From the sequence record OZ195776.1: 64,000 nucleotides of DNA. The stretch is one strand, 5' to 3'. A model generated the notes under the pieces. It saw only the letters and a list, made by a program, of their open reading frames with translations, had not been told where the DNA came from and did no database searches. Below, in pieces: positions 7,843 to 41,644 of the stretch. A program made the translations under genes and the position numbers. Within the stretch, counting starts at the first letter, position 1. Each line of letters starts with the position of its first letter.

Positions 7843-7895
7843 GACCGTTCCCGGCCGACAGAGCCCATATTACAGGACTCTGTCTCAAAGGCAAC
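7843..7895 (-). promoter_or_regulatory. Early promoter GTTGCC...TAATAT plus class A leader hairpin
   Basis: TTGCCT-N16-TAATAT then GGGCTCTGTC GGCCG-GGAA-CGGTC; repeated at 12.7 and 24.5 kb. Confidence 0.8.
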
Positions 7896-7898
7896 GCT

Positions 7899-8384
7899 TT
7901 ATCCGAAAAACTTTGGATTAAATGCGAGATGTTGATTGCTGTAGCGGCCATCGGAAGTTACCTCAACACCCACCCAATCAGGCAGTGTAACGTCTTCTAA
8001 GCCGGTTTCTAACTCAACCTCAGCAGTTACAAGCCCTTCCAATTCGCCACGGTATACATCGACTTCCCACACAGTTCCTTCGTGGTTGATGTAATGACGA
8101 GTTTTCTCAATCTCAGCCATTGCCATCTTTTGAAGTGCACGAGCTTCGCCCAAGTAAAGAGGTTTCTCTACTTCGAGTCGACGTAGACCACCATCGTACG
8201 ATTTGCCTTTGATAGTCAATGTACCGAGATGGTCGTCTCCGGTAATCGCTTCGATACGAACTCGCACTGCACGCTCTGGGTCGTTTGTAAGGTACGCTTG
8301 CTCAATTTCAACGCTGTAATTGGCCAACTTGCTCCAGTCTACTGAGCGATCAGCGACTAGGAATTTACGTTCTATCTCGATCAT
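7899..8384 (-). CDS. CYTH-domain protein (triphosphate tunnel metalloenzyme)
   Basis: EIERKF, IEQAYL, VRVR, IEKTRH, WEVDVY, AEVEL motifs. Confidence 0.9.
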   Translation of the reverse strand: MIEIERKFLVADRSVDWSKLANYSVEIEQAYLTNDPERAVRVRIEAITGDDHLGTLTIKGKSYDGGLRRLEVEKPLYLGEARALQKMAMAEIEKTRHYINHEGTVWEVDVYRGELEGLVTAEVELETGLEDVTLPDWVGVEVTSDGRYSNQHLAFNPKFFG

Positions 8385-8563
8385 GATAATTGTCCTGCTT
8401 TGAAACCTTCCAACCAAGCCGCTACGCAATACACGTTATACGACTCATATACGACTTGAGTACCTTCAAGAACCTGGTAGCGGTCCTCGTTGTATTCATT
8501 TGGAGAGCGGTCGTAATCGAATCCCGCTTTCTCTACCAGTTGTTGCAAATCCCAGCTTGTCAT
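8381..8563 (-). CDS. Hypothetical protein
   Basis: Start MTSWDL, GAGG RBS. Confidence 0.5.
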   Translation of the reverse strand: MTSWDLQQLVEKAGFDYDRSPNEYNEDRYQVLEGTQVVYESYNVYCVAAWLEGFKAGQLS

Positions 8564-8564
8564 G

Positions 8565-8963
8565 TTAGAACCTCTCGTATTCGTATTTGATACCAGCCGC
8601 GCCGAGTACTTCCGCGATTGGTGGATTTTGGTATGAATCGTCGTAACAGCCGCTCCACTCACGACGAGGAGTCAGATCTTTTTCTTCTGGATAATCGTCT
8701 ACCCATCCAGCCAGAAGTGCGATTTTGACTTTCTGCTCGTGGTCGAAACTTTCCCACATTTCGCGTTCATCATCGCAGCACCATACGAACTTATCGTCAT
8801 CGTAGTAACCACGACCGTAGTCGCTTAGGTAACGATAGATCTCGTTCTCAAATGGACTGATTATGCGTTCAGTGAACCAATTTGCGATTGATTCTGGTGG
8901 TTCTTGTGTAATAACGAAAGAAGACGAAGAACTGTTTGAAACAAAGCCGTTACGAATTTTCAT
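8565..8963 (-). CDS. FVSNSSSSSF-family protein 1
   Basis: N-terminus MKIRNGFVSNSSSSSFVIT. Confidence 0.75.
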   Translation of the reverse strand: MKIRNGFVSNSSSSSFVITQEPPESIANWFTERIISPFENEIYRYLSDYGRGYYDDDKFVWCCDDEREMWESFDHEQKVKIALLAGWVDDYPEEKDLTPRREWSGCYDDSYQNPPIAEVLGAAGIKYEYERF

Positions 8964-8970
8964 GCTGCAC

Positions 8971-9366
8971 CTATTCGATGATGTTGATTTTGTTACCAAA
9001 GCGACGGTTGAATCGCGCTACGATGTTTTCTGGATGACGTTGCTTGAACTTGTTGTACCACATGATTGGAACAAACGAGCCAACAATGACGCCAAAGCAA
9101 CACAACGCGAACAGACCTGTGCCAAATAGACCAAGAACCAGAACGCTAAGTGGACCAGGATTAACCATTAGTCCGGCAGCAATGTGCGTGCCGAAGGCGC
9201 AGACCACGGCAAAGATTGAGACAAATGCCATGACTGTGAGAAAGATGCTAAGAACAGTTTGCTTGACGTATTCAGCAGGCGACCAGTGGTTGATACGACC
9301 AGGAGATACGAAGAATTTGTTCAGTTTGAAGTGCCAAGATGATTTGCTAATTTCGAAGTTTTTCAT
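8971..9366 (-). CDS. Membrane protein
   Basis: Two long hydrophobic segments. Confidence 0.55.
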   Translation of the reverse strand: MKNFEISKSSWHFKLNKFFVSPGRINHWSPAEYVKQTVLSIFLTVMAFVSIFAVVCAFGTHIAAGLMVNPGPLSVLVLGLFGTGLFALCCFGVIVGSFVPIMWYNKFKQRHPENIVARFNRRFGNKINIIE

Positions 9367-9370
9367 AACG

Positions 9371-9616
9371 TTACCATTTAATTTCTTTGTTTAGGTCAAT
9401 GTTCGTGTGTTCTACCACCCACGTGACTGTAAAAATGATGATCTGAGCTGCGATTACAACAGCGATGCCGGTGAGTGTTCCTGGCAATCCAATCACCATT
9501 ACGAATAGTTGCCAGAGTTTCGCTTTGCGTTCTTCAAACACTGTGGTTGCGAAGCACAGTGCCATTAGATTGATGAAGAACCACGCTATTAGCGATAATG
9601 TGATGAGAGCTGTCAT
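9371..9616 (-). CDS. Small membrane protein (GLPGTL type)
   Basis: Hydrophobic; resembles 18235..18432. Confidence 0.55.
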   Translation of the reverse strand: MTALITLSLIAWFFINLMALCFATTVFEERKAKLWQLFVMVIGLPGTLTGIAVVIAAQIIIFTVTWVVEHTNIDLNKEIKW

Positions 9617-9885
9617 TACCACTCCACCATAATTGTGCGGTAGTTGTTTCCTTTGAAGTCTAAATCGTCAGAGGAATCTACCACGAAGTTACGAGCACGT
9701 AGCTCATCGGCAATCTTCGAAGTTGTTTCAGAATCCGTATAGCAACGCGGATGCATGAACTTACAACGAAATTCACCACGCATTGCTGCTTCTGTGATTG
9801 TTTTCAGTGCGTCAGCGACACACAAACGAAAGCGTTGTTGGTATTCTGCAAACTCACGAGCTTCTGCTGCGTTTTCAATAATCAT
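9616..9885 (-). CDS. Hypothetical protein
   Basis: In-operon ORF. Confidence 0.55.
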   Translation of the reverse strand: MIIENAAEAREFAEYQQRFRLCVADALKTITEAAMRGEFRCKFMHPRCYTDSETTSKIADELRARNFVVDSSDDLDFKGNNYRTIMVEW

Positions 9886-10337
9886 TTCATTGGCACCTTG
9901 TATTCGGTTTTACATTGTGGGCAAGCGCCCGCTTTAAATTGTGGAGAGACATAACTACGTCGTGTCCAGCTTACCAGATCAACATCAAACTCACAACAGC
10001 ATTTGTCTTCTGGAATGTTGTAGTAGTAACGAAGCAACTCGACGTTTGTTGCAACACCACAGAAGTACGGCTTGTGCAACACACCTTCTGGAATACGTTT
10101 GTCGACTACCAACGCAACTTTGCAAGGTCCATCTCCAAACAGAATAGCTTCCATCTTACCATCCAGAATATCATGATCGACCATGTATTCCAGATTCTCA
10201 GCCCACAAATTGGCCAGGTAAATCTCGGAACCACCACGACCAACAAAGCAGTAATTGCCACGTTTCCAAGGGAATTCTGACGAGAATCCTACACAACTCA
10301 TCATTCCGACCATGGTGCTAATCATTTCTGTTTTCAT
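9882..10337 (-). CDS. Hypothetical protein with C-terminal Cys motifs
   Basis: CCC and CPQC; start uncertain (10337 or 10349). Confidence 0.5.
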   Translation of the reverse strand: MKTEMISTMVGMMSCVGFSSEFPWKRGNYCFVGRGGSEIYLANLWAENLEYMVDHDILDGKMEAILFGDGPCKVALVVDKRIPEGVLHKPYFCGVATNVELLRYYYNIPEDKCCCEFDVDLVSWTRRSYVSPQFKAGACPQCKTEYKVPMK

Positions 10338-10573
10338 CGTATACCCCAATCATCTGTATCGGTTTTAACTTTCCATTTAGTATCCACTTGGTTGCTAGCA
10401 ACCTTGTGCATAATTGCGTTGGCATCTTCTAGTGAATACGTGTGATATTCACCACGAGTGTTTTTAGTTCCATCAGCGTTCAAATCGGTCCAGAAGAACC
10501 AACCTTTTTGTTGAACACGGAACTTACCGTTCTTCTCGATTACACGTACTCTGACATTAGCTGGATTCGACAT
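10334..10573 (-). CDS. Hypothetical protein
   Basis: In-operon ORF MSNPANV. Confidence 0.5.
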   Translation of the reverse strand: MSNPANVRVRVIEKNGKFRVQQKGWFFWTDLNADGTKNTRGEYHTYSLEDANAIMHKVASNQVDTKWKVKTDTDDWGIR

Positions 10574-10994
10574 TGAAATGACCACCCTTCTTAGTGAAAA
10601 TTTGATGAGTTTTGATCACACGCTCTCGGTTACCGTGGTTACGTTCTTTGTAACAGGTGTGCAACTTGATAAGGTAGTTGCCGTTCAACGTGCGGCGCAT
10701 GGTCATTCCGATCATATGGCCGTCATCACCATAAACGTTGATACGACGGTGCGTTCCAATTTCGTATAGGTAAATCATCTCACAAACATGGTATCGAACA
10801 GTACGTGTAATGATTTTCTCAAACTGCTCTTTTGGAAACTCACGATCGATTAGACGGTCAGCGATGTGCTTTTCGAAATCAAACTTAACGTTGATACCTT
10901 CATCATTTTCGGACAGGTTGTTTTTGATTACCATTTCAGTTAAGAAGTTGCTAATCAAACGACCCATTTTGTAGCGATTCATTGGTTGTGTCAT
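10557..10994 (-). CDS. regB: RegB-like site-specific endoribonuclease
   Basis: KHIADRLIDRE, RINVYGDDGHMIGMT and C-terminal RVIKTHQ match T4 RegB as I recall it (QHLLDRAIQRE, RLEITDGNLWLGFT, AVIKTQ). Confidence 0.65.
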   Translation of the reverse strand: MTQPMNRYKMGRLISNFLTEMVIKNNLSENDEGINVKFDFEKHIADRLIDREFPKEQFEKIITRTVRYHVCEMIYLYEIGTHRRINVYGDDGHMIGMTMRRTLNGNYLIKLHTCYKERNHGNRERVIKTHQIFTKKGGHFNVESS

Positions 10995-11004
10995 AATAAT
11001 ATCC

Positions 11005-11166
11005 TCAGTCAATCTGCAGTAATTTGCGAATGTTGTTGTAAACGTTTTCAGAGAACACAAATAGCATTTGCTGTTGTGCTTTTTCGGTGTAATCCCAGTA
11101 CTTCACACCACCTAGTCCACAATCAATGGCCAGGTCGTAAGCTGGGTTGCCTTGTGGAAGTGACAT
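11005..11166 (-). CDS. Hypothetical protein (53 aa, not in track)
   Basis: MSLPQGNPAYDLAIDCG...; abuts the J-domain gene stop. Confidence 0.5.
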   Translation of the reverse strand: MSLPQGNPAYDLAIDCGLGGVKYWDYTEKAQQQMLFVFSENVYNNIRKLLQID

Positions 11167-11729
11167 TAGCGCACTCCCATCTCTCTTAGTTCGTAGTCGC
11201 GATACTCTTGCGTATTGGCAGCTACCGGTAAACCATCCACCATGTGAGGTGCTGAGGCAACCTGAGTTGGCCCACCAAATGAAACTGTTGGACGACCTAT
11301 GTTAAACAGAATAACACCAAAGAACATGATAAATCCAAATAGCACCATGCCCATGAACATACGATCTTTTTCACCTCGCATCTTGGCTTGGTCGTATTGA
11401 AGAAAACGGCATCGGTTGTGGTAATAAACCGTGGATGCTTGTTGTTCTCTCAATTGACGATTCAACTTAACAACGTGGGTCTCAAGCTCGTCGATGTAAT
11501 CATCTTCGTAACGATGAGTCTGCTTCGGTTGCTCTTGTTGGATAGCAGTTTGGCTATCGCGAGCTCCATTACCAGCAAGAATCTGCTCGTAAGAGTTCTT
11601 CAAAAGAACAAACAACGGACCAGAACCGTTTTTGTCTGGATGCAGTTTTGTGCTAAGTTGACGGTAACGTTTTTTAACTTCTGATCGAGTTGCGTTTGGT
11701 TCAACACCAAGTAGTTCAAAGTGATTCAT
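11166..11729 (-). CDS. J-domain (DnaJ-type) protein with C-terminal transmembrane helix
   Basis: FELLGV...KKRYRQLSTKLHPDK with the HPD motif; TM MFMGMVLFGFIMFFGVILF. Confidence 0.85.
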   Translation of the reverse strand: MNHFELLGVEPNATRSEVKKRYRQLSTKLHPDKNGSGPLFVLLKNSYEQILAGNGARDSQTAIQQEQPKQTHRYEDDYIDELETHVVKLNRQLREQQASTVYYHNRCRFLQYDQAKMRGEKDRMFMGMVLFGFIMFFGVILFNIGRPTVSFGGPTQVASAPHMVDGLPVAANTQEYRDYELREMGVR

Positions 11730-11770
11730 AATATTCTCCTGTGGACGGGGTCGTTGACCCCATCTAAATG

Positions 11771-12019
11771 TTAGTTTGATTCAGCGAGTGCTTCGATGAC
11801 TTCACTAAGTGCCATTCCAGCCACACAATCAGCGCCTAAACGGGCAGCGGCCATGTAACGGATTTCACCTTCGGTAAGACCTTCTACGATATCCAGACCA
11901 TCACGAACTGGCTGTAATGCCATATCAACCGTGGTACCAACTGGATCATGACAGAAATCATCCACTGTATTTGAAACTGAGTCAACGGCGCTGCTTACTA
12001 AATTACCTAATCCAAACAT
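11771..12019 (-). CDS. Hypothetical protein
   Basis: GAAGGAAG RBS, 82 aa. Confidence 0.55.
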   Translation of the reverse strand: MFGLGNLVSSAVDSVSNTVDDFCHDPVGTTVDMALQPVRDGLDIVEGLTEGEIRYMAAARLGADCVAGMALSEVIEALAESN

Positions 12020-12076
12020 GTTACTTCCTTCTAATTGTGAGTTAATGGCTCCGAATGTTCCGGAGCCTACATTGTC

Positions 12077-12631
12077 TTACAGTTTGATACCGTTGTCAAT
12101 GCCTGTTTCAAACGCTTTGTTTGTGTGGTCGTTCAGAACAACTTTACAAACGTCAGACAGATCTTTCTTAGGGAAACCAGCCATGCGCAACCACATACCA
12201 CCCCAGAAGTAACCAAGTTCTTTCTCGTAGTTACCACAGATATCGATTTTCTTGGTCTGACTTAGACGGAATTCGTTACGACCAGCTTCCATTGTGTTCT
12301 GCAGACGCGTATACATGCTGCTATCAAACGGAAGATTCTGCTCTTGAATCCACTGCATCGTTGCTTTGGAACCATCTTTGCCATAACGACCGCCGAAAGT
12401 AGCTGAGATGACTTCTTTCAAGTCTTCTTTGTACTTGCCAGGAACTTGAGCCATTTCCATGATTTTGGTGGTGTAGTTGGCAAGAGTGTTTTGGCTTTCT
12501 TTGTGGAATTTGCCGATATCAGCTTCCCATTCCGTACCTTTGTTGTGAGCGCCAACGTAACTGGACACACCAACGAATGTTGGTACAGCGATAACAGTAG
12601 CAAGAATTAGAGCAACGTGAGAACCTTTCAT
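12077..12631 (-). CDS. LemA-like membrane-anchored protein
   Basis: N-terminal TM, helical body, GGMWLRMAGFP end; start MKGSH. Confidence 0.5.
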   Translation of the reverse strand: MKGSHVALILATVIAVPTFVGVSSYVGAHNKGTEWEADIGKFHKESQNTLANYTTKIMEMAQVPGKYKEDLKEVISATFGGRYGKDGSKATMQWIQEQNLPFDSSMYTRLQNTMEAGRNEFRLSQTKKIDICGNYEKELGYFWGGMWLRMAGFPKKDLSDVCKVVLNDHTNKAFETGIDNGIKL

Positions 12632-12658
12632 GATTTTTCCTTCATTTGTTTTTGTTGA

Positions 12659-12712
12659 TGGCCTTTGCCGGCCGACAGAGCCCATATTACAGATTTCATT
12701 TTAGATGGCAAC
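12659..12712 (-). promoter_or_regulatory. Early promoter plus class A leader hairpin
   Basis: TTGCCA-N16-TAATAT then GGGCTCTGTC GGCC-G-GCAA-A-GGCC. Confidence 0.8.
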
Positions 12713-12714
12713 AG

Positions 12715-13233
12715 TTAACCACAATCGGTTCCATCAAATTCTGGGAATTGACCATTCAGTATGCGAATTGCCTGGTTTGAGTCGCGCTCAGTAAGTCCAG
12801 AAAATCCATTTACATGGACGAAATTGTCGCGTTGCCAGTAAAGCATATCGCTATCATCGTCCAAAATAACGTACGTATTGAAGTCGTAATGATACCCAAC
12901 AAGTTCTTCATTGTCTTTGATCCACTTGAGGATTTCATTACCACGGAACACGAACCCGTTGTTGTAGTCTTCGGTCATTCCGATGATTTCACCGTCAATG
13001 CCCATCAAACGACACATTTCTTTTAGCTCATCGAGCTCTGCACCAAGTCTCCACGTAGACGAGATCACAATCTTAGCGTCTGTGTGGTCGATGATACGAT
13101 TCAACAAGCGTACGTTACGGTCGCTGTAGAAGTACGAACTACGAATGTTCTTCGGGTCGTGCGAGATTGGATGATTTTCAGCGTCGATGGCGTTATTCAA
13201 AACGCCATCGATGTCCAAGAAGATAATTTTCAA
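12715..13233 (-). CDS. HAD-family phosphatase (HAD_SAK_2, RNA-repair type)
   Basis: IFLDIDGVLN, IVISSTWR, RGNEI, YVILDDDSDM. Confidence 0.85.
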   Translation of the reverse strand: MKIIFLDIDGVLNNAIDAENHPISHDPKNIRSSYFYSDRNVRLLNRIIDHTDAKIVISSTWRLGAELDELKEMCRLMGIDGEIIGMTEDYNNGFVFRGNEILKWIKDNEELVGYHYDFNTYVILDDDSDMLYWQRDNFVHVNGFSGLTERDSNQAIRILNGQFPEFDGTDCG

Positions 13234-13234
13234 G

Positions 13235-14395
13235 TTATTCCCTATGTGTGTTTTGTGCTAAGCCGTAGCTGATACCAGCGCCCGCAAGGAAAGCGAGAAT
13301 TTGGATGATGACTAACAAACCAGTTGGTGGTTGGATAGACTTCTTGATGTATTCCATATTCTTCATTTCATAGCGATTGTAATCGGCTTCAATCACGGTT
13401 AATGACTTGTCTAGTGCAGTTTGCCAGAAATCTGGTTTGTCTTTGTTAGACTCGTGCAGAGACGCTAATTCACTGTGTAGCAATTGGTTGTTGTAACCTT
13501 TTGCGAACGACGTGCTCTTGAACCAATTCAGCTTGTTATCGTCGTCAAGACCAAAGAACAGAATTACGTCGTTCTTCTTACCGCCTTTCCATTGATACAT
13601 TACGTCATCAAAGTACGATGCAGGCTTTTTGGTACCAATTACAATCACATTCACTTGCTTTTCGTAACCATTGACGCGTAGCCAGTTACGAACTTGCTCG
13701 TTCCAACCATCAAGTGGAGATTTCCATTCGTTTTTAGGATTCGCAATTTCAGTATCATCAATTACCAAATCAACGTTGTAGTAGTCGATTACGCGTGGGT
13801 ACTTCGGAGCTAACGCATTCTCTGAGCGTGCATATTCAAATGCGTTATTCGGAGCAAGTAACCAGTTCGTATAGCCGTTGCTTTTCGATACAGGATCTTC
13901 TTTGTGAATCACACCCCAACGAATTGGCATATCAGTACCACGACGGTCTACACGATCAATCTCGTAACCACCAATGGTCGTCTTAACGAACCAGCGCGTT
14001 TCGTCGCGATAATCGTAGTTGTATTGCGTTTTGTAGTCACACACACGACGACTTGTCTTGTTCTTACCAGTGCCGGATGTTTCAGTGCGACAGTTGTATT
14101 CTACGGTACGAGTATCGTAGTTCGAACAGAATGCGTCTGGCCAATCGGTCCAACCACTCGGACAGGTTTCAGTGACTTTGTTCTTTTCTTGAACAAACCC
14201 ATGCCACAATTCAGTATCAGCGGTTTGGCTGTTCATATAACCAGCTTGTAAGCCAAGATGGATACCAATTGCCAACACAGAGGCAACAAGACCACCACCA
14301 ATTAGCTCATACCACGTAATTTCACGCTTAAAGACCGCGAATTTAAGGATAAAAACGCTTAAAAACGCTGTAATACCACTGAATATCCACATCAT
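13235..14395 (-). CDS. Multi-pass membrane protein with large extracytoplasmic domain
   Basis: Two N-terminal and one C-terminal TM; WKGGKKNDV segment. Confidence 0.6.
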   Translation of the reverse strand: MMWIFSGITAFLSVFILKFAVFKREITWYELIGGGLVASVLAIGIHLGLQAGYMNSQTADTELWHGFVQEKNKVTETCPSGWTDWPDAFCSNYDTRTVEYNCRTETSGTGKNKTSRRVCDYKTQYNYDYRDETRWFVKTTIGGYEIDRVDRRGTDMPIRWGVIHKEDPVSKSNGYTNWLLAPNNAFEYARSENALAPKYPRVIDYYNVDLVIDDTEIANPKNEWKSPLDGWNEQVRNWLRVNGYEKQVNVIVIGTKKPASYFDDVMYQWKGGKKNDVILFFGLDDDNKLNWFKSTSFAKGYNNQLLHSELASLHESNKDKPDFWQTALDKSLTVIEADYNRYEMKNMEYIKKSIQPPTGLLVIIQILAFLAGAGISYGLAQNTHRE

Positions 14396-14694
14396 ACTCG
14401 TTCACCATAGTCTTTGAGATTGTTGTTGATACCAAACACACGATCTTCGTGCTTCGAGTTTTTCATAGCTTCAATCGACTTTGCGGTAGGAGTAATGGTG
14501 AATATGTCTTCAACCACATCGTAACCGTATTTGGACGTCTTAGCTTGCTCACGAGCACGTTCTTGAGCACGAACAAGAGCATCACGAGTTGGAGCGATGA
14601 GGTAACCATCAGGACGAGCACCCCAACCAAATTCAACTTCGGTTACTGCTGCTGCATACGCGATTACTTTTGTTTCAAGTTTTAGTTCTGCCAT
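14392..14694 (-). CDS. Hypothetical protein
   Basis: AAGGAG RBS. Confidence 0.6.
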   Translation of the reverse strand: MAELKLETKVIAYAAAVTEVEFGWGARPDGYLIAPTRDALVRAQERAREQAKTSKYGYDVVEDIFTITPTAKSIEAMKNSKHEDRVFGINNNLKDYGERV

Positions 14695-14705
14695 GATGTT
14701 ACTCC

Positions 14706-14846
14706 TTAGTAACCAACGATTTCGTCAAGGATTTGATCGAAGTCTGAATTAACAGCTTCTTCGCCGAATTTACCAACGGTGTTATCACGAACAGCGTCGA
14801 TATCAAGATTCGAATTTTCGATAAGATCAAGTACGTAGTCAAACAT
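14706..14846 (-). CDS. Small acidic early protein (46 aa, not in track)
   Basis: MFDYVLDLIENSNLDIDAV...; AGAGG RBS; first gene after the promoter. Confidence 0.6.
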   Translation of the reverse strand: MFDYVLDLIENSNLDIDAVRDNTVGKFGEEAVNSDFDQILDEIVGY

Positions 14847-14865
14847 TTTAATTTCCTCTTTAGTT

Positions 14866-14918
14866 GCTAGCCCCGTGCCAACAAGACCTATATTACAGGA
14901 ATGCGTTTAAAAGGCAAC
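14866..14918 (-). promoter_or_regulatory. Early promoter plus class B leader hairpin
   Basis: TTGCCT-N16-TAATAT then AGGTCTT GTTGGC-ACGGG-GCTAGC. Confidence 0.8.
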
Positions 14919-14927
14919 GATCGGAAA

Positions 14928-14957
14928 ACAAAAAAAGCGCCAAAAGGCGCTTTCTTT
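14928..14957 (-). terminator. Intrinsic terminator
   Basis: AAAGCGCC/GGCGCTTT stem with T-tract on the minus strand. Confidence 0.8.
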
Positions 14958-14958
14958 A

Positions 14959-15351
14959 TTAGCAGTACTCTGTACCGCCACCAACTGAGATTTGCTTGCC
15001 AGTATGTTCGGCAATCTTCGTCAGCATCTTGTGTTGCTCTTCAGTTACGAAACCGTTGATACAGTCGTTTACCGAGAAGTTTTCTGGATCGTCTTCTACG
15101 CCCAGAGTGAATTCGTTGCCCCACTCGTACGTTTTAATACGTAGACCAGCATCGCCGAATGCACCTTCAAGCATATCGCCAAGAGAGTACATGCAATCTG
15201 TTTCTTCCAGGTCTTCTTTGTTCTTGTCGTAGAACGTTGGATCAAGGTCTTTAACCGCACCAAGCAATTCTTCGCGGTTAGCGAAATCAATACCACAAAT
15301 TACGAAAGAGCTGCTTGAGCTGTTTGATACAAAACCTAAACGAATTTTCAT
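14959..15351 (-). CDS. FVSNSSSSSF-family protein 2
   Basis: MKIRLGFVSNSSSSSFVICG. Confidence 0.8.
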   Translation of the reverse strand: MKIRLGFVSNSSSSSFVICGIDFANREELLGAVKDLDPTFYDKNKEDLEETDCMYSLGDMLEGAFGDAGLRIKTYEWGNEFTLGVEDDPENFSVNDCINGFVTEEQHKMLTKIAEHTGKQISVGGGTEYC

Positions 15352-15723
15352 TTATTCACCATCTAAAATTGTTTTCACGCCAGGAGCGCTTGTTAAAAGA
15401 TCTACGACACCAGTTTCGCCGTATTCAAAAGAACCTTCGAGAACCACGTTCCCATTTTCGATTGCTTTGCGCATGTCGTCGTAACGCTCTTGCACCCAAT
15501 CTTCGTCAGCTAGGATCTCAGCGACGTCTTGCTTACCGCCCCAACCGTAGTGGTCAACAACCCACTTATCCAACTCTTCCATGTTAGTAATCGTGGTTTC
15601 GAATACACGATCTGGTTTGATCTTGACAGTAACTGTACCATCATCGTTCATTCCGTCACCAGGAAGACTGATGATGAAACTTGAACTTGAGCTGTTTGAA
15701 ACGAAGCCATTACGAATCTTCAT
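15352..15723 (-). CDS. FVSNSSSSSF-family protein 3
   Basis: MKIRNGFVSNSSSSSFIIS. Confidence 0.8.
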   Translation of the reverse strand: MKIRNGFVSNSSSSSFIISLPGDGMNDDGTVTVKIKPDRVFETTITNMEELDKWVVDHYGWGGKQDVAEILADEDWVQERYDDMRKAIENGNVVLEGSFEYGETGVVDLLTSAPGVKTILDGE

Positions 15724-16103
15724 GACATTTCCTTCAATTTAGTTTTCCAAAAATTACGCCAGACGTGGATGTATTTGGATTTACCATTCCATTCTGACAG
15801 TTTCTTAGGCACCCACGTATCACCGTGTTTGGTTTTAATCCAAAATGCTTTTTCGGTTTCACGCAATACGATGCAAGGTACTTGTGTATGATGATGCAAC
15901 CGGTCACGATGAAAGGGCGCTGGTGGAGAATACGACCGTCCTGCGGTAGGAACTAAGTGCGAGCCACTTTGAAGCATCTCGTTTCCTTGCTCATCTACGA
16001 GACCAAGGTCATATCGAGTTTGCGGGTCGCTGTAACGATGTTCTTCCGCTAATTCTGAGGTGCTGAATGCGTAATCCAGCGCCATATCTGCCATATCACC
16101 CAT
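15720..16103 (-). CDS. Hypothetical protein
   Basis: In-operon ORF MGDMADM. Confidence 0.55.
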   Translation of the reverse strand: MGDMADMALDYAFSTSELAEEHRYSDPQTRYDLGLVDEQGNEMLQSGSHLVPTAGRSYSPPAPFHRDRLHHHTQVPCIVLRETEKAFWIKTKHGDTWVPKKLSEWNGKSKYIHVWRNFWKTKLKEMS

Positions 16104-16107
16104 GCCG

Positions 16108-16470: not shown

Positions 16471-16480
16471 AAAACTGTTC

Positions 16481-16570
16481 TCATAAACTTACGAAGCAAA
16501 CAAATGCGACAATAAGGCATCCACTAAGGATGCCAAAACAAAACTGCGAACAACGTCTAATGAAGTCCAT
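16481..16570 (-). CDS. Possible 29-aa Cys-rich hydrophobic peptide (not in track)
   Basis: MDFIRRCSQFCFGILSGCLIVAFVCFVSL fills the gap; RBS weak. Confidence 0.35.
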   Translation of the reverse strand: MDFIRRCSQFCFGILSGCLIVAFVCFVSL

Positions 16571-16574
16571 ACAA

Positions 16575-17655: not shown

Positions 17656-17656
17656 T

Positions 17657-18228: not shown

Positions 18229-18234
18229 ATTACC

Positions 18235-20073: not shown

Positions 20074-20146
20074 TATATTTTACCTTTCATTTAGTGGATA
20101 CAGATAGCTTACCGATTCTGAATCCAATTTACAACAGTTCAATTAC

Positions 20147-20170
20147 AAAAAAACCGGCAAATGCCGGTTT
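20147..20170 (-). terminator. Intrinsic terminator
   Basis: AAACCGGCA/TGCCGGTTT stem plus T-tract. Confidence 0.75.
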
Positions 20171-20172
20171 AA

Positions 20173-24540: not shown

Positions 24541-24593
24541 GACCGTCTCCGGCCGACAGAGCCCATATTACAGGAATACGGATAAAAGGCAAC
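24541..24593 (-). promoter_or_regulatory. Early promoter plus class A leader hairpin
   Basis: TTGCCT-N16-TAATAT then GGGCTCTGTC GGCCG-GAGA-CGGTC. Confidence 0.8.
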
Positions 24594-24601
24594 TACTGGA
24601 T

Positions 24602-24629
24602 AAAGAAAAAGCCGGATAAACCGGCTTTT
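24602..24629 (-). terminator. Intrinsic terminator
   Basis: AAAGCCGG/CCGGCTTT stem plus T-tract. Confidence 0.75.
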
Positions 24630-24631
24630 AA

Positions 24632-25441
24632 TTATTCTACTTCTTTAAACTCTTGTTCTAGCAGGAGTTCTACGTCAGTTTGGACATTATCTTCTTCAAT
24701 GGAAGGAGCTTCGTCTTGTGCGCGAACCTCGTCGTTTGTCATCGTGACGATTGTTGGATCAAGCGCACTCGGAGTCTTGATGAGTTCCGTAGCATTGGCT
24801 AATTCCTCAGCCATACGCTCTTCAACGCGTTTCTCAACAGCCTTTTCAAACTCTTCGATCTTTTTGCGCTTCTCAGCTTCTTCGGCATCGGCCGCTTCTG
24901 CTTCCATGAATTCAGCAACGTATTGCAAACGCTCTGTTACTTCTTCTGGAGTAAGCCACGCATCTTGGTTCAAGTTGATGATTTCGTTTAGTTCGACTTC
25001 ATCAAAGAACGGAGAATATAGGATTGACGCAACACGGTTTAGGTGTTCTTTGTGAGACTCAGCTTGTTTCAACGTATCTGGCATTTTACCAAGCTGTCCG
25101 CCTGAGCTCGTGTGGAACATAAACGTACTAAAGTCGCTTACGTGCCATGCGTTACAAGCAAGGAAAATCATAGTGCCTGCAGACAAAACTTCGCCTTCTG
25201 CACAACCAACAACAGCACCTGCTTTGGATTGCAAAATAGCATCACAAATCTGACACGCGGTTGCAAAATTACCACCAGGTGTGTTGATGTGCAAGTACAC
25301 AAGATCACGTTCGGTAGCAGTTGCCAAACACTGTAGCAGCGTGTGGTAGTCTTCTGCTTCTTCAATCACGCCTGTGATGTAAAAATCATGACGAACAGAT
25401 TGCGGATGCATGAACCAATCCACTGGGTTTTTAAAAATCAT
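24632..25441 (-). CDS. ClpP/crotonase-fold serine protease with acidic C-terminal tail
   Basis: LHINTPGG, EVLSAGTMIFLA (Ser), FMFHT (His), QDAWLT. Confidence 0.8.
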   Translation of the reverse strand: MIFKNPVDWFMHPQSVRHDFYITGVIEEAEDYHTLLQCLATATERDLVYLHINTPGGNFATACQICDAILQSKAGAVVGCAEGEVLSAGTMIFLACNAWHVSDFSTFMFHTSSGGQLGKMPDTLKQAESHKEHLNRVASILYSPFFDEVELNEIINLNQDAWLTPEEVTERLQYVAEFMEAEAADAEEAEKRKKIEEFEKAVEKRVEERMAEELANATELIKTPSALDPTIVTMTNDEVRAQDEAPSIEEDNVQTDVELLLEQEFKEVE

Positions 25442-25989: not shown

Positions 25990-26013
25990 AAAAAAGGGCC
26001 ATATTGGCCCTTT
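25990..26013 (-). terminator. Intrinsic terminator after gene 32
   Basis: AAAGGGCCA/TGGCCCTTT. Confidence 0.75.
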
Positions 26014-29823: not shown

Positions 29824-29832
29824 AACAATCAT

Positions 29833-33548: not shown

Positions 33549-33557
33549 GAGGTAAAC

Positions 33558-36815: not shown

Positions 36816-36819
36816 CATT

Positions 36820-36843
36820 AAGCCCGCTCTTGCGGGCTTTTTT
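36820..36843 (+). terminator. Intrinsic terminator
   Basis: AAGCCCGC/GCGGGCTT plus TTTTT. Confidence 0.85.
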
Positions 36844-36847
36844 GTAT

Positions 36848-36940
36848 CTAAAATAACGCCGGAATAACTCCAACAGCGATTATTCCAAGTATAACAATTA
36901 CAATAATCAGTTCAATAAGTGTAAAACCTTTCTGGTTCAT
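36848..36940 (-). CDS. 30-aa micro-prepilin (type IV pilin alpha1-N only; not in track)
   Basis: MNQKG/FTLIELIIVIVILGIIAVGVIPALF with G-1, F1, E5, G14, P22; AGGAG RBS 7 nt upstream. Confidence 0.8.
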   Translation of the reverse strand: MNQKGFTLIELIIVIVILGIIAVGVIPALF

Positions 36941-37056
36941 ATAGCGCTCCTAATGCGTTCTAAAGGGTTCAAGTCGAAACTTGATTGATTTATCAGGTAC
37001 ACGTCTATAACACCAGTAGAACGGATTCTAGACGGATTAACAAACACGTTACTCGC

Positions 37057-37330
37057 ATTTCAAATCAAAATCAACCACGAACTTGGATTAAGCGCTTGCG
37101 CTAAAATCCTCCAGCTTCTTATAGTAGTTATTGTATTAGGGGTTTTTAAAAGGCTTTTAATAATTTTATAATTTATATAAGGGATGGTTTATAATCGCTA
37201 GTAAATCGATTTCAAATCAAAATCAACCACGAACTGGCGCTAAAATCCTCCAGCTTCTTATAGTAGTTATTGTATTAGGGCTTTTTAAGAGTTTTAAAAG
37301 GTCTTATAAGATTTTATAGGGTTTGTCAAC
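37057..37330. repeat. Long direct repeat with AT-rich tails (origin-like)
   Basis: 27-nt block at 37057 and 37209; 44-nt block at 37098 and 37237. Confidence 0.85.
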
Positions 37331-37405
37331 AGTTAAAGGTTATCTGGGTGCGAATTGCTGGGACAATGTAGGCCTCTGTTGATAAATACAAAGGTAATTT
37401 TTGAA

Positions 37406-37642
37406 ATGATTACTATTTACGTAATCCAAGGATGTGATAGCTGCAGACATGCTATTGCACTTGCTGAATTCAAAAAGGTTGAACACGAAGTATTGACTTT
37501 GGCGTCTGACTCCGACGTAGACCAATTGAGAACACGACACGATTTCAAAGGTCAGGTCCACGTTCCTCTAGTGTTTAACGAAAAAGAATACATCGGCCAT
37601 ATTCCCGAGTTCAAGCGTTGGGTAGACGCTCGATATAAATAA
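37406..37642 (+). CDS. Glutaredoxin
   Basis: CDSC, VHVPLVFNEKEYIG; GATAAATA upstream at 37381. Confidence 0.8.
   Translation: MITIYVIQGCDSCRHAIALAEFKKVEHEVLTLASDSDVDQLRTRHDFKGQVHVPLVFNEKEYIGHIPEFKRWVDARYK
37634..37641 (+). promoter_or_regulatory. Late promoter TATAAATA
   Basis: Exact consensus before the capsid vertex-like gene. Confidence 0.8.
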
Positions 37643-37693
37643 GGTCATCAAACAAAACCGCAGTATTTCGCGGGTAAGACAAAAGGAACAAAA

Positions 37694-38614
37694 ATGTCTA
37701 TTTCAACGGTAAATGCATTACCGGACATCGTATCCGTACAGAAGCGAGTGTATCCACTTATTCTAACTGCGGTGGTGTCTGAGCAACCAACATCACAACC
37801 ACTTGCAACAGCATTTGGTCTAACAAGAACCGCCGATACCGATGATGGTAGTGGTTGGTCTTCATTCAATTTCCGTTTTGATCGCTGGTATACGCAGGTC
37901 GAATCAACAAAGCTGAAATCTGAAATCTCAACTGAATTGCTGCAAGATATGCGTGCAATGGGTCTTGATGAATCAGTAATCGAAGAAAACCTTGCTGACG
38001 AAATTGCCGACGAAGTGAATAAGAAAATTCTACGTTCACTAGACTTGATTTCAGATTCTGGTACTGGCATTACAATTTCAGCAGCTTTGGACAAATTCAA
38101 TCAAGGTCGTAATCTGTACACCGAAGTACATGCTCGAGTGGCTCAATTAGAACGAGATACTGGTTGTACAGGTACGTACGTAGTTGCTGGTGGCGAGGCG
38201 TTTGATTTGCTTTCTGGGTCATCTTTGGCTAAGAAAGAAGAAGGTACTAATCACTGGAGAATGAAATCTGGTTTGATTTTGGTACACGACAAATACTCAG
38301 CTATCAATTACATCAACGTTGGTGTTAAGAAAGTATATAACGATTTCGAAATCTCAAGTCTTGTATTTTCAACATATGATTACATGGGTGCGACTAGCGC
38401 AGGTGTTCAAGCTCCATTGGCGTACAACGTAATTGGTCAAGATCCTAACTCGTTACATCCAATCTACGGTGTTATTGCTCGTTATGCAATTACTGCAGCT
38501 CCTATTGATGCACCAGCTGGTGGTCAAGGCGTGCAGGAAATCGACTGGACTGCTTTCGATGCAACGAAATTCCAATCAAAACTATCAGTTAAATCGACGG
38601 TAACGATAGCTTAA
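37694..38614 (+). CDS. 24: Capsid vertex protein gp24-like (short gp23 paralog)
   Basis: gp23/24-like segments VSEQPTSQP, EIADEVNKKILRSL, GTYVVAG, P.YGVIARYAI; late promoter. Confidence 0.7.
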   Translation: MSISTVNALPDIVSVQKRVYPLILTAVVSEQPTSQPLATAFGLTRTADTDDGSGWSSFNFRFDRWYTQVESTKLKSEISTELLQDMRAMGLDESVIEENLADEIADEVNKKILRSLDLISDSGTGITISAALDKFNQGRNLYTEVHARVAQLERDTGCTGTYVVAGGEAFDLLSGSSLAKKEEGTNHWRMKSGLILVHDKYSAINYINVGVKKVYNDFEISSLVFSTYDYMGATSAGVQAPLAYNVIGQDPNSLHPIYGVIARYAITAAPIDAPAGGQGVQEIDWTAFDATKFQSKLSVKSTVTIA

Positions 38615-38656
38615 TTCTATTGGGGAGCAGATTGCTCCCCTAATCACAGGTGGCAC

Positions 38657-39163
38657 ATGAGCAATAATCATTATGTAGATAATAAAGCACTCTTCGCAAG
38701 CATGAAAGAGTGGAAAGAAGAGTTAAAGACCAACCCAGAAGCGATCCTCCCTGATCCGATTGCCGAAGGTATTATTAAAATTGCGCAAAATCTTTCTCGT
38801 AGATATAACTTCTCTGGGTATACTGCAACGTGGAAAGAAGAGATGATAGGCGACTCAATCGAGCACTGTCTTCGATACGTAAAAAACTTTAACGTTGATA
38901 AATATGATAACGTGCACGCGTACATCACGCGTATTTGTTTCAATGCATTCGTTCAACGAATCAAGAAAGAACGCAAAGAAACAGCAGTTAAATACAAGGT
39001 GTTCCTCCAGGATGCAATGGACCATGTTGAAGAAGGTGAATTAGATTTCGAATTCTGTCAGCAAATGCTTGAGCGCGTAAACGATTACGAAGCAAGTAAA
39101 AACTCCAACAAACAACCGCCTGTGAAAAAGGAACCACAATTCTTAGAGAAATTCTACAAATAA
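38657..39163 (+). CDS. 55: Late-transcription sigma factor gp55
   Basis: HYVDNK, NFSGYT..WKEEMIGD, AYITRICFNAFVQRIKKE. Confidence 0.95.
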   Translation: MSNNHYVDNKALFASMKEWKEELKTNPEAILPDPIAEGIIKIAQNLSRRYNFSGYTATWKEEMIGDSIEHCLRYVKNFNVDKYDNVHAYITRICFNAFVQRIKKERKETAVKYKVFLQDAMDHVEEGELDFEFCQQMLERVNDYEASKNSNKQPPVKKEPQFLEKFYK

Positions 39164-39172
39164 GGACAGAAT

Positions 39173-40594
39173 ATGTTTGCTAAATTTGATGCATTCCTAT
39201 CGGAAAATCAACGAGCAACGGCAACTGGCAAATTGTACAGTAAATTCGGGCAGGTTGTAATCATGCTGGGCGAAGCTAAGACTTCGTTCAGCAAACGTTA
39301 TGCAGATCGTGTAACCCTAAAGCAACTTTACAAGATGGGTGAATTGCAAGAGACTTTCCATTCTCGTATTAAAGCGGAAATTGGCAAGCCTGCTCGCTAC
39401 TTCGATCTATCTTTGACCGAAAACATTGGTACAGCCAACTTGCTGATGCAAGATGTGTACGAATCATTACCAATTAATGACGTATCACTACACAAATCAC
39501 AACTACTTGCTGTTGAATCACGTCTACCGACTATGGTTTTCGACGCAACTAAAGACGACATCAATTGGATTGTTGAAAATGCTGTGAAACTTGGTTACAA
39601 AAGCGAAAACGTACACGTAGTTATCAACGAATCTACAATGGATGTTGAGCTTGCTGAATCAGAGCGCATTATCCCAGACCGTATTTCATTCGGTGGCGTT
39701 ACAAGTAAAGAATTGCTAGAGTCAATCAGCGATATCGAGCTTGGCGACGTTTACGTAGCGTTCCAAGAAGCTAAATGCCCAGTTCAACTGGAAGAAGTGT
39801 CTGAAATCCAAATCAAACACCGCAAAACAGCTATGAAAGTAAGTGAAATGAACCGTCATGTTCTAAATCACGTAATTGCTAAACCATCTGCAGATAGCGA
39901 CTTTGGTATCAATAAAGTAGACGGTCCAGTAGTTGAAGGCTTCAAAGCGTATGAGTTCCACCTACCTGGGGAGCGTCATGTATTTGAAAGCAGCGTATTT
40001 GCTACTCCGACAATCGTTCCGATGACGGAATCTGGTTGGAATAAACTAGCTGATACAAAACTTGCTTACTTTAGCAATGGCTGGAAAATGCAACAAAACA
40101 ACCGCCGTATCGTGTTCACGGAAGCTAAAGACGCTCTGCGCTCTGGCAAACGTTGTACAGAATACGTGTTTGAGTTGAAAGAGCCTGGTTACCCACTGTT
40201 GGACGTTCTAACAATGTGTGAAGGTCGTTTCAGTATTGATGCAATTGCTCGCTCAATTCCAGCAATGAATGGTCGTACAACTCCAGACTTCCAAACTGCT
40301 ACTGCATTCGTTACAGAAGTAGAATCAAACCGCGTTTATCATCCTGGTCAAGCACATAACTTGCGTCCAGCCACCCAGATGAACTCGCTAAACGATTTGG
40401 TACGTGCTATTTCGAACAAGCAATTCAACGAATTCGTGGTTGAACATATCGACACGGATACAATGCTAAGTGAAAACTCAATTGATTCATTAGTAGAACA
40501 CATCGTTTCTAATGGCGTTGAGATGAGCCAATCTGGCAACGAAATTACATTTGACATTACGGATGTTAAATACAAAATCAAACACACAGTTTAA
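39173..40594 (+). CDS. Hypothetical protein, possibly a degenerate P-loop fold; capsid-targeting-like N-terminus
   Basis: KFGQVVIMLG without GxGKS; TACAAATA at 39155. Confidence 0.5.
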   Translation: MFAKFDAFLSENQRATATGKLYSKFGQVVIMLGEAKTSFSKRYADRVTLKQLYKMGELQETFHSRIKAEIGKPARYFDLSLTENIGTANLLMQDVYESLPINDVSLHKSQLLAVESRLPTMVFDATKDDINWIVENAVKLGYKSENVHVVINESTMDVELAESERIIPDRISFGGVTSKELLESISDIELGDVYVAFQEAKCPVQLEEVSEIQIKHRKTAMKVSEMNRHVLNHVIAKPSADSDFGINKVDGPVVEGFKAYEFHLPGERHVFESSVFATPTIVPMTESGWNKLADTKLAYFSNGWKMQQNNRRIVFTEAKDALRSGKRCTEYVFELKEPGYPLLDVLTMCEGRFSIDAIARSIPAMNGRTTPDFQTATAFVTEVESNRVYHPGQAHNLRPATQMNSLNDLVRAISNKQFNEFVVEHIDTDTMLSENSIDSLVEHIVSNGVEMSQSGNEITFDITDVKYKIKHTV

Positions 40595-40606
40595 GGACTA
40601 TTTTGA

Positions 40607-41254
40607 ATGAAATCATTAACTGATTATCTTGAAGAAGCACAAGTATTCTCATCTGCAGCGACTTCAATTAAAGGTAAAGAAGTAGCAGCACTTGTCAAGC
40701 TGTACAATTCTGGTATGTTCCGCGAAGGCGGTACTGCACTTGATGCAGGTGCTGGTAAGTACGGTCGTAACGCTGAATGGCTACGCAAGCAAGGTATTCG
40801 CACTTACGCATATGATCCTTTCAACGGCACTACTGCTGATGGTTGGGAAGCTGTTTCGACTGTTATGCCAAACGAAAAGTTTGATACAGGTTTCACATCT
40901 TACGTACTAAACGTTGTACCAGAAGAAGTTGAAGCACAAATCATCCGTGACGTTGAAGGTCGTGTAAATGGCACAGTATTCCACATCACTCGTGGTACTG
41001 ACGTAACAGACATGATTTGGCGTACAATCCAGCCTGGCGGCAAGCGTAACAAGTACATCATGGAATTCATCGAAGCTAACTACCCTGAGTACATGGCTAA
41101 GATCGATGCTGGTGATGTAACTAAAGAAGACGCAACAGCTCTTGCGAAACTTGGAGTTGCATCCGCAAAAGATAGCTTCCAACGTTATCCTGATCTATCG
41201 AAGTACGGCTACAAACGTAGCGGTTCTGGCGCGTCAATCGTCTGGACGAAGTAA
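40607..41254 (+). CDS. Class I SAM-dependent methyltransferase-like protein
   Basis: ALDAGAGKYG motif I, YAYDPF, FTSYVLNVV. Confidence 0.7.
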   Translation: MKSLTDYLEEAQVFSSAATSIKGKEVAALVKLYNSGMFREGGTALDAGAGKYGRNAEWLRKQGIRTYAYDPFNGTTADGWEAVSTVMPNEKFDTGFTSYVLNVVPEEVEAQIIRDVEGRVNGTVFHITRGTDVTDMIWRTIQPGGKRNKYIMEFIEANYPEYMAKIDAGDVTKEDATALAKLGVASAKDSFQRYPDLSKYGYKRSGSGASIVWTK

Positions 41255-41267
41255 TTCGAAACACTTT

Positions 41268-41294
41268 AAAAGCCCGCATTTAGCGGGCTTTTTT
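41268..41294 (+). terminator. Intrinsic terminator
   Basis: AAAAGCCCGC/GCGGGCTTTT. Confidence 0.85.
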
Positions 41295-41373
41295 GTGCCT
41301 CAAAGAAAATCGTTGCCAATCAGTTTTATTCGTGTACGGTGTGCTGTGTAATCAAATTAACCGGAGAAATCGC

Positions 41374-41586
41374 ATGCTATTAGCGACTTGTATCAACAAC
41401 ACTTCATTTCGTATCGACAAGCCAGAGCCACCAACTGGTCTTACTCACGGCAAAACGTACGAGGTTGCTATCTACAACCAAAACGCAGATAACAACCAAC
41501 GCCCTCCAATGGTTCGTTTCCGTAACGATAACGGTCAAATGGCGTCTTATACTGCTGACCGATTTAAAATCGAATTTGTTGGATAA
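41374..41586 (+). CDS. Hypothetical protein
   Basis: GGAG RBS; TTGCCA-N16-TACGGT upstream at 41313. Confidence 0.55.
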   Translation: MLLATCINNTSFRIDKPEPPTGLTHGKTYEVAIYNQNADNNQRPPMVRFRNDNGQMASYTADRFKIEFVG

Positions 41587-41590
41587 AGTT

Positions 41591-41644
41591 GTTGCCTTAA
41601 AATTGTTATCCTGTAATATGGGTCTTGTTGGCACGGGGCCGACC
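41591..41644 (+). promoter_or_regulatory. Early promoter plus class B leader hairpin
   Basis: TTGCCT-N16-TAATAT then GGGTCTT GTTGGC-ACGGG-GCCGAC. Confidence 0.8.

Follow-up and report, generated by a model that had tools for sequence, protein, structure and literature searches.

Dispersed early-promoter cassettes with a predicted 5'-proximal leader hairpin in the KVP40-like Vibrio phage D479

Results

Early-promoter cassettes of Vibrio phage D479

We analysed a 64,000-nucleotide stretch of DNA (the window) in which five early promoters are each followed by a conserved leader containing a short predicted hairpin. The window corresponds to nucleotides 62001-126000 of Vibrio phage D479 (OZ195776.1; 257,764 bp); a megablast search with positions 7000-15500 returned this single record, at 100%. 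The annotation of D479 contains a T4-type gene set (gp32, gp59, gp33, dsbA, gp55, gp46/47, gp43, rIIA/B, RegA, Alt, and Alc). Its DNA polymerase was only 66-67% identical to those of KVP40 and of the 6E35.1a group, and D479 therefore represents a separate lineage of the KVP40-like "schizo-T4" vibriophages; we class it as a KVP40-like T4-type jumbo phage. In our study, the promoters and leaders were found to form a family of repeats with a common anatomy, in which the hairpin is coupled to the promoter. The cassette is conserved in a second phage, and an analogous hairpin is present in another lineage.

The original prediction had described five GTTGCCW-N16-TAATAT sites, and all five were recovered exactly, at 7895, 12712, 14918, and 24593 on the minus strand and at 41591 on the plus strand. 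The expected number of such sites was 0.02, and five were reached in 0 of 100 shuffles. Their assignment to the sigma-70-type early promoters of a T4-like phage was supported, as was the extension of the conserved block beyond the -10 box into the transcript, and the leader sequences of both proposed classes matched their description. The promoter consensus was longer than first described, namely GTTGCC, N14, and CTGTAATAT. The whole D479 genome was assembled from retrieved pieces and then scanned for the promoter and the leader. The promoter family gave 21 clean matches to a position weight matrix (PWM), and the score range from 12 to 24.8 was empty. Promoter and leader occurred together in 19 cassettes, 14 of class A and five of class B, which include the five of the window (Table 1).

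The class A leader contained GGGCTCTGTC followed by GGCCG-loop-CGGYC. In the window, the GGCCG arm was followed by a GGAA, GCAA, or GAGA loop and then by CGGTC or AGGCC. The copy with GCAA, at 12712, closes with a G.A pair, so that it is really a 4-bp stem with a hexaloop; a GNRA loop on a 5-bp stem was present in 11 of the 14 class A copies. The class B leader contained GGCTYTGTTGGC-ACGGG-GCYRRC, with ACGGG as the loop; in the window it reads (A/G)GGTCTT followed by GTTGGC-ACGGG-GCTAGC or -GCCGAC. The GGGCTYTGTYGGC sequence was common to both classes.

Each cassette of about 75 bp was found to contain GTTGYC, a 17-bp spacer, (C)TG-TAATAT, a discriminator of the GGGCTCT type, the hairpin, an A-rich unstructured linker, a Shine-Dalgarno (SD) sequence, and an ATG. 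Across the copies, the frequency of the majority base was 0.94-0.96 from the -10 box to +20, followed by 0.76 in the -35 element and 0.59 in the spacer; upstream of the -35 element and past about +40 it fell to the background of about 0.4. The open reading frames (ORFs) downstream of the cassettes were mutually unrelated. The untranslated regions (UTRs) were 35-50 nucleotides long, and the hairpin on their 5' side was the sole predicted structure (-5 to -11 kcal/mol), the rest being open and bearing the SD sequence. The distance from the hairpin to the ATG ranged from 18 to 33 nucleotides.

All 19 copies have the leader hairpin at a fixed distance from the promoter, and its class A motif was found only 10 nucleotides after TAATAT and nowhere else in the 257 kb. 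Two natural variants in which the parts are uncoupled were present: at record position 145036 ATCCCTT replaces GGGCTCT and the hairpin is retained, and at 175545 GGCTCTGTC is retained and the hairpin is gone. No U-run follows the leader hairpin, which is therefore not a terminator. An upstream terminator was present in six of the 19 cassettes, and a stem enclosing the -10 box in three, including that at 7895.

Table 1. Promoter, leader, and associated features of the cassettes in the window (window coordinates; starts and hairpins are predicted)
Feature	Position	Strand	Remarks
Class A cassette 1, promoter	7867..7895	-	GTTGCC 7895-7890, 17-bp spacer, TAATAT 7872-7867; PWM score 48.1
Cassette A1, discriminator and predicted start region GGGCTCTGTC	7857..7866	-	Predicted start G 7859; the string earlier called boxA-like
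Cassette A1, leader hairpin GGCCG-GGAA-CGGTC	7843..7856	-	Predicted +4..+17; -8.1 kcal/mol; sole predicted structure in 39-nt UTR
Cassette A1, downstream unstructured linker, SD, ATG	ATG 7820-7818	-	
10-bp inverted repeat GACAGAGTCC / GGGCTCTGTC, -10 box in loop	7857..7884	-	Spacer complementary to the sequence after the -10 box
Class A cassette 2, promoter	12684..12712	-	
Cassette A2, leader hairpin GGCC-GGCAAA-GGCC	12660..12673	-	4 bp and hexaloop, or 5 bp with G.A closing; -8.6 kcal/mol; ATG 12631-12629
Class B cassette 1, promoter	14890..14918	-	
Cassette B1, leader hairpin GTTGGC-ACGGG-GCTAGC	14866..14882	-	Predicted +1..+17; -7.0 kcal/mol; ATG 14846-14844
Intrinsic terminator immediately 5' of cassette B1	14934..14953	-	PeSL-like terminator-promoter arrangement
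Class A cassette 3, promoter	24565..24593	-	
Cassette A3, leader hairpin GGCCG-GAGA-CGGTC	24541..24554	-	-8.1 kcal/mol; SD, ATG 24518-24516
Intrinsic terminator immediately 5' of cassette A3	24607..24629	-	Break in the gene order shared with KVP40
Class B cassette 2, promoter	41591..41619	+	Early promoter at equivalent position in KVP40 and 6E35.1a
Cassette B2, leader hairpin GTTGGC-ACGGG-GCCGAC	41627..41643	+	-8.1 kcal/mol; ATG 41663
Sixth related cassette, absent from the original prediction	59506..59609	+	Terminator 59506-59526, GTTGAC 59533-59538, N18, TAATAT 59557-59562, nrdG ATG 59607

Predicted transcription start

The -10 box of the T4-type early promoters lies at -12 to -7 relative to the mapped start (PMC1524935). 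GTTGCC, the 17-bp spacer, and TAATAT give the D479 promoters a canonical geometry. In all 19 D479 copies, a T followed by a purine was found at nucleotides 7-8 after the -10 box, and we infer that transcription starts at this conserved step. From this geometry, the class A RNA is predicted to begin with GUC-GGCCG, the stem occupying +4 to +17, and the class B RNA with GUUGGC, the stem occupying +1 to +17. The offset of the hairpin from the predicted 5' end (+1 in class B and +4 in class A) thus follows from promoter geometry only.

The annotated coding sequence (CDS) starts of VPHD479_0107 and VPHD479_0151 (7868 and 24566, minus strand) were found to be ATG triplets within the -10 box (TAATATG). 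The SD sequence and ATG 48-50 nucleotides downstream (7820 and 24518) are more likely starts for the two genes. The cassette repeat probably misleads gene callers elsewhere as well, for example at record position 132946, where a tiny CDS overlaps a cassette.

Pairing and folding of the leader hairpin

The stems had been described as covarying. Paired cells made up 95% and 93% in the two classes of D479 leaders, and all variation was GC/GU or UA/UG and lay on the 3' arm. Pairing is thus kept by one-sided changes, but no double-sided compensatory change accompanies them and shuffling gave no significance, so that covariation in the strict sense did not stand. Among random genomic windows of 24 nucleotides, 1% folded at -8.1 kcal/mol or better, and the leader hairpins fell within the top 1-6% of genomic 24-mers. 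The G.U pairs were the majority state in class A and made up two of the six pairs in class B. Such pairs would be mismatches in a double-stranded DNA palindrome, which favours RNA, and so does the confinement of variation to the loop, the closing pair, and the wobble-tolerant sites. Within D479, this evidence for an RNA structure is suggestive only. A short transcribed hairpin, as proposed originally, is plausible, and we still favour a hairpin that would form at the RNA level: a relative retains the cassette core and the stem although its loops depart from GNRA, and a separate lineage has another hairpin at this place (see below).

A search with a covariance model of class A recovered the 14 class A copies and one hairpin-less derivative, and class B weakly, but it returned nothing in 100 kb of KVP40 and 6E35.1a. 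The leaders gave no Rfam match at the gathering score and none at E<=5.

We also considered an SD sequence that is hidden in read-through RNA and free in the promoter's own transcript, as in T4 gene e. The probability of an unpaired SD was 0.45-0.9 in the promoter's own RNA and averaged 0.32 in read-through RNA, compared with 0.38 when the upstream sequence was shuffled. Four of 60 shuffled replicates were equally low; the effect was not significant overall and was convincing at a few copies only, including 24593.

The -10-enclosing inverted repeat of cassette A1 (7857-7884), folded together with the GNRA hairpin, gave -25.5 kcal/mol (z -6.1; 0 of 200 shuffles). The 7857-7884 stem can form only in read-through RNA or single-stranded DNA. 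The same 10-bp stem was present in the copies at record positions 165133 and 189982, and in the latter a C-to-T change keeps the pair as G.U.

The cassette in related phages

A blastn search in distant mode with both leader types found D479 itself as the sole match among GenBank phages. Exact-pattern scans of IMG/VR and JGI metagenomes with the -10 box plus leader, or with the -35 and -10 boxes, gave 3, 94, and 111 matches, all due to chance, as the other half of the element was missing. The relatives were reached through the proteins encoded beside the cassettes. Homologues of the gene at 13235-14392 were found in distant phages only, without the cassette.

In the Logan assembly of SRR25393948, an uncultured close relative of D479, two syntenic contigs with the cassette were found; the amino acid identity was 73% for Alc and 89% for NadV. 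The relative keeps the core TAATAT-GGGCTCYGTC-GGCC...GGCC, and the spacers, UTRs, and loops differ. The loop of the alc cassette is GGCAAA in D479 and AACAAA in SRR25393948; of the other SRR25393948 copies, one has the loop GGGTTA and one is identical to class A of D479 with GGAA. The loops of the relative depart from GNRA, so a GNRA loop is not required, which argues against loop-specific recognition. Three SRR25393948 contig ends lie inside TAATATGGGCTCTGT(C), and the repeat thus breaks short-read assemblies. The leader of D479 gene 0047 belongs to class B and that of its SRR25393948 ortholog to the class A type; this shows cassette exchange directly, although it is the one clear case in a small sample. 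The terminator that follows NadV in SRR25393948 has a stem sequence unlike that of D479 and is still a terminator.

The ENA assembly ERZ23489554 contains, on scaffold_4 (record 86.9-127.7 kb), a separate schizo-T4-like lineage with a NadV identity of 64%. Six early promoters were found in 41 kb, each followed by 6 nucleotides, GAA, and GUCGAG-loop-CUCGAC or -CUUGGC; in one copy, GUCAAG is present instead and the loop is longer. Every cell of this hairpin is paired, and one pair shows GC, GU, and AU, which is not statistically significant with six copies.

KVP40, 6E35.1a, and L225 contain a AUCGNAACGA motif at the same position, with the 3' arm mostly missing and a folding energy of 0 to -4.4 kcal/mol. 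This motif looks like a homologue of the 5' arm and loop of the ERZ23489554 hairpin. A start motif with little predicted structure, (C/T)ATCGNAACGA, follows the early promoters at 9466, 16450, 21147, 34356, and 39858 of the KVP40 stretch, at 9233, 14763, 28548, and 39187 of the 6E35.1a stretch, and at 11592 and 15395 of L225. The presence of a motif or hairpin at the same place across these phages indicates that a conserved initial transcribed sequence is general in the group. A stable hairpin is predicted in the D479 clade, with two unrelated stems, and in the ERZ23489554 clade, with a third. In several KVP40-type early promoters, the -35 element was embedded in a terminator stem, GGGTTGC-TTCG-GCAACCC, with a T-run.

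In KVP40, clpP is followed by uvsX. After the clpP-like gene of D479 come a terminator, a class A cassette, and a block of about 24 kb in which most genes are hypothetical. The uvsX gene of D479 is located elsewhere, and this class A cassette (24593-24632 of the window, compared with 4480-4547 of the KVP40 stretch) therefore sits at a break of synteny with KVP40.

Other features of the window and of the D479 record

The sixth cassette, at 59533 on the plus strand, has a leader that differs from both classes, with an inverted repeat at 59566-59586 that spans the predicted start. Folding gave -2.1 kcal/mol from the predicted start and -9.9 kcal/mol if read through. The repeat straddles the start, so that the promoter's own transcript would have no stable 5' hairpin, and this leader was rejected as a third type in support of a general 5' hairpin. 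This gene junction, upstream of nrdG, bears an early promoter in KVP40 and 6E35.1a as well. A weaker promoter of the same type (GTTGTA, 18 bp, TAAGCT), whose leader is unrelated, comes after a strong terminator (20170-20151) on the minus strand at 20074-20172.

Between a tail-fibre gene and a gp24-like gene (36816-37693), about 850 bp contain only tiny annotated ORFs. The T4 late-promoter motif TATAAATA was found at 37634, about 55 nucleotides before the gp24-like start, and again at 5191, before the opposite-strand homing endonuclease gene at 5293-6021. Between gp32 and frd, at 25993-26013, lies a perfect terminator that is bidirectional, AAAGGGCC-loop-GGCCCTTT, each strand having a T-run.

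Outside the window (record positions 52974-53663, 153707-154513, 189067-189969, 161609-162649, and 166363-167784), the D479 record is annotated with genes for a GTP cyclohydrolase and for QueC-like and QueE-like enzymes, which suggest a 7-deazaguanine DNA modification. The NAD salvage pair of NadV and an NMNAT-like gene, Sir2, and an Alc-like gene are annotated as well.

Discussion

In the descriptions consulted here (Arbiol 2010, Comeau 2014; PMC2839356, PMC4122927), promoter early stem-loop (PeSL) modules are known from RB49/phi1, T4/PST, and nt-1/KVP40 and contain an AT-rich region, a stem-loop, a sigma-70-like early promoter, an SD sequence, and an ATG. Their repeated copies lie in plastic regions and bring about gene shuffling, with exchange documented in RB49/phi1 and nt-1/KVP40; the stem-loops of RB49 lie between the -35 and -10 boxes or overlap the -10 box, and those of nt-1 are upstream terminators. 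We tentatively read the D479 element, with a probability of about 0.45, as a dispersed early-promoter cassette that is a variant of the PeSL modules and has a 5'-proximal leader hairpin, most likely for the protection of the 5' end. In the proposed mechanism, the discriminator GGGCTCT would belong to the promoter and not to the RNA, and the initial transcribed sequence would fold into a small GC-rich hairpin within the first 17 nucleotides. The hairpin would act as a structural 5'-end element that shields the early mRNAs from 5'-end-dependent decay (RppH, RNase E/G), and, irrespective of the downstream gene, the surroundings of the ribosome-binding site would stay open and constant. Recombination among the cassettes would keep the copies alike and swap them between genes. 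The original prediction had offered antitermination, stabilisation, or translation as the function of an RNA signal; stabilisation is the one that we prefer, whereas antitermination through a nut site was not supported.

The stabilising function is inferred by analogy. In Escherichia coli, 5' stem-loops protect mRNAs from RNase E, and RppH requires unpaired 5' nucleotides (reviewed in PMC3997798). The T4-type phages manipulate 5'-end-dependent decay via PNK, RNase G/E, and RegB (PMC3014915). D479 encodes PNK and an Srd-like protein.

Several points weigh against this reading. No 5' hairpin was found at five of the 24 strong D479 promoters. Neither D479 class shows a double-sided change, the shuffle controls for pairing were not significant (107/500 and 91/500), and the folding z-scores of single leaders were modest, ranging from -0.9 to -2.25. 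The invariance of the 5' arm would also agree with a signal in DNA or RNA that is read by its sequence; in KVP40 and 6E35.1a, the AUCGNAACGA motif is kept with little or no hairpin, and the initial transcribed sequence may matter non-structurally. The three unpaired 5' nucleotides may make protection in class A partial, and a start further upstream or downstream would weaken the 5'-terminal argument. Concerted evolution alone could keep paralogous copies alike.

The sequence from +1 to +17 might instead act at the level of DNA or initiation, where it would tune open-complex stability, promoter escape, or early pausing, or serve as the operator that shuts off early promoters within a few minutes of infection. 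We regard this as unlikely, but it stays a serious rival because the KVP40-type phages conserve the sequence without the stem. The region from -10 to +20 is the most conserved part of the cassette, above the -35 element, and the 5' arm is invariant. Sigma region 1.2 contacts the discriminator, and the GGG directly after the -10 box fits such a contact. How T4 early promoters are shut off is "not completely understood" (PMC3014915). The arms, however, pair via G.T and make a poor palindrome in double-stranded DNA, and the three unrelated stems (class A, class B, and ERZ23489554) lie at the same place with different symmetry centres, so that a single DNA-binding protein is unlikely. On inspection of the leader sequence, no -10-like, sigma-dependent pause element was seen. 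A somewhat smaller chance is given to a hairpin that has no function of its own: it would travel with a recombining cassette, gene conversion would keep it uniform, and it would matter solely by providing homology for modular gene shuffling, the role of a PeSL. The near-identity of the paralogous copies, the breaks of the relative's assembly at the repeat, the class swap at an orthologous gene, and the cassette at the KVP40 synteny break all agree with such passive carriage, as does the documented PeSL-mediated exchange in RB49/phi1 and nt-1/KVP40. It fits poorly with a conservation that is sharply peaked and not even across the cassette, with a core kept between two phages whose proteins differ by 11-27%, and with the reappearance of hairpins of unrelated sequence at one offset, in both D479 classes and in another lineage.

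The layout had originally been compared to a nut site, and processive antitermination of the nut or put type, in which RNA polymerase would be altered at the promoter by the leader RNA, acting by itself or together with Nus factors and a phage protein, so as to pass terminators in long early operons, now appears improbable. The boxA of lambda and rrn is CGCUCUUA / UGCUCUUUA (nut definitions in PMC2724277), of which only GCUCU is matched by the class A string, while class B reads GCUUUGU or GUCUUGU. The GGGCTCT string comprises the seven nucleotides directly after TAATAT, and the string compared with boxA lies 2-8 nucleotides after the -10 box; it is mostly upstream of the expected start and is thus the discriminator, the greater part of which should be outside the RNA. 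Similar pyrimidine-rich strings follow the -10 box in KVP40, 6E35.1a, and other relatives (AGCTCT, AGCTAC, TACTTC, and AACCTT) without a boxB and with a different downstream sequence. The spacer that separates boxA from boxB, 8-9 nucleotides with AUU in nut, is absent, the hairpin abutting GUC, and the 19 sites are locked to promoters. The class A stem of 5 bp with a GNRA loop does resemble boxB, but the loops drift in the relative (GGGTTA and AACAAA) and the class B loop is different. Cassettes 7895, 12712, and 41591 have no upstream terminator and head long gene arrays, and T4 delayed-early expression has long been linked to antitermination, in works cited by PMC2988021. Nevertheless, the strong terminators are each directly followed by a promoter (minus strand 14953-14934, 20170-20151, 24629-24607, and 26013-25993; plus strand 59506-59526), and the region therefore consists of terminator-promoter units rather than of one promoter reading through. 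The leaders lack an Rfam match, no antiterminator is present in the annotation of the D479 record, and a scan for an arginine-rich motif (ARM), a weak test, found no small protein with an Arg-rich N-terminus on a coding strand. Equally improbable is a hairpin that serves as a "self" tag on early transcripts or transcription complexes, read by a phage or host factor as it emerges, which would give resistance to termination or shut-off (for example by the phage's own Alc-like terminator, the DNA maybe lacking hydroxymethylcytosine) or exempt the mRNAs from RNase E decay stimulated by the phage; if true, T4-like phages would have a promoter-proximal device for immunity or antitermination that is based on RNA. 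Least probable of all is that the hairpin is bound or cleaved by a post-transcriptional regulator that times early expression, such as a nuclease like RegB or a repressor like CsrA or RegA. Many class A loops contain GGA or GGAG, which recurs in the SD sequence about 20 nucleotides downstream, and D479 encodes RegA and PNK. A CsrA/RegB-type motif was not common to all loops, however, being absent from GCAA, ACAA, GGGTTA, and the ACGGG of class B; the distance from hairpin to ATG is variable, and no RegB is annotated.

In the first minutes of infection, the early transcripts of T4-type phages come from very strong promoters, and their protection, timing, and later shut-off are only partly understood. 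A portable module of promoter, hairpin, and open ribosome-binding site, used about 19 times and conserved in a second phage, with an analogous hairpin at the same offset in another lineage, offers a clean testable case. From the module it may be learned by what means a phage makes the expression of shuffled accessory genes uniform, and whether a 5' structure favours phage over host mRNA. With it, the PeSL concept also comes to include a transcribed stem-loop. In practical terms, it draws attention to gene starts mis-called inside the -10 box and to assemblies of such phages that break at the repeat.

Comparison with known systems

The nutL and nutR sites of lambda (boxA-spacer-boxB; NusB/E, NusA, and N) resemble class A, in which most copies have a GNRA-type loop on a 5-bp stem and a GCUCU string lies 5' of the stem. 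They differ in that the D479 string lies in the discriminator, without a spacer and with a promoter-locked hairpin of variable loops, and neither an N-like protein nor terminators that need read-through were found in D479. The AUCGNAACGA motif of KVP40 and 6E35.1a follows the same type of promoter, directly after a pyrimidine-rich discriminator, and starts with a purine and UCG; it differs in its weak folding (0 to -4.4 kcal/mol), whereas stable stems are predicted in D479 and the ERZ23489554 lineage. The ompA, papA, and T7 phi10 stabiliser leaders resemble the D479 leader in a short stable hairpin a few nucleotides from the 5' end, which is a predicted one in D479, in the absence of a loop requirement, and in the open linker with the SD sequence. 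The D479 hairpin is a repeated module fused to a promoter, unlike these gene-specific UTRs.

Like the known PeSLs, the D479 cassettes are repeats of about 70-100 bp that lie dispersed in plastic early regions, with a strong promoter (TTGYVH-N17-TAWWAT in nt-1/KVP40), a stem-loop, an SD sequence, and the start of a small ORF. A minority of the D479 copies has the upstream terminator (6/19) or the -10-enclosing stem (3), and the class swap at the gene 0047 ortholog and the synteny break at clpP point to cassette exchange. The PeSL descriptions consulted contain no mention of a transcribed leader hairpin. In D479, by contrast, the conserved stem-loop lies downstream of the -10 box at a fixed offset, without a U-tract, and would be part of the promoter's own transcript.

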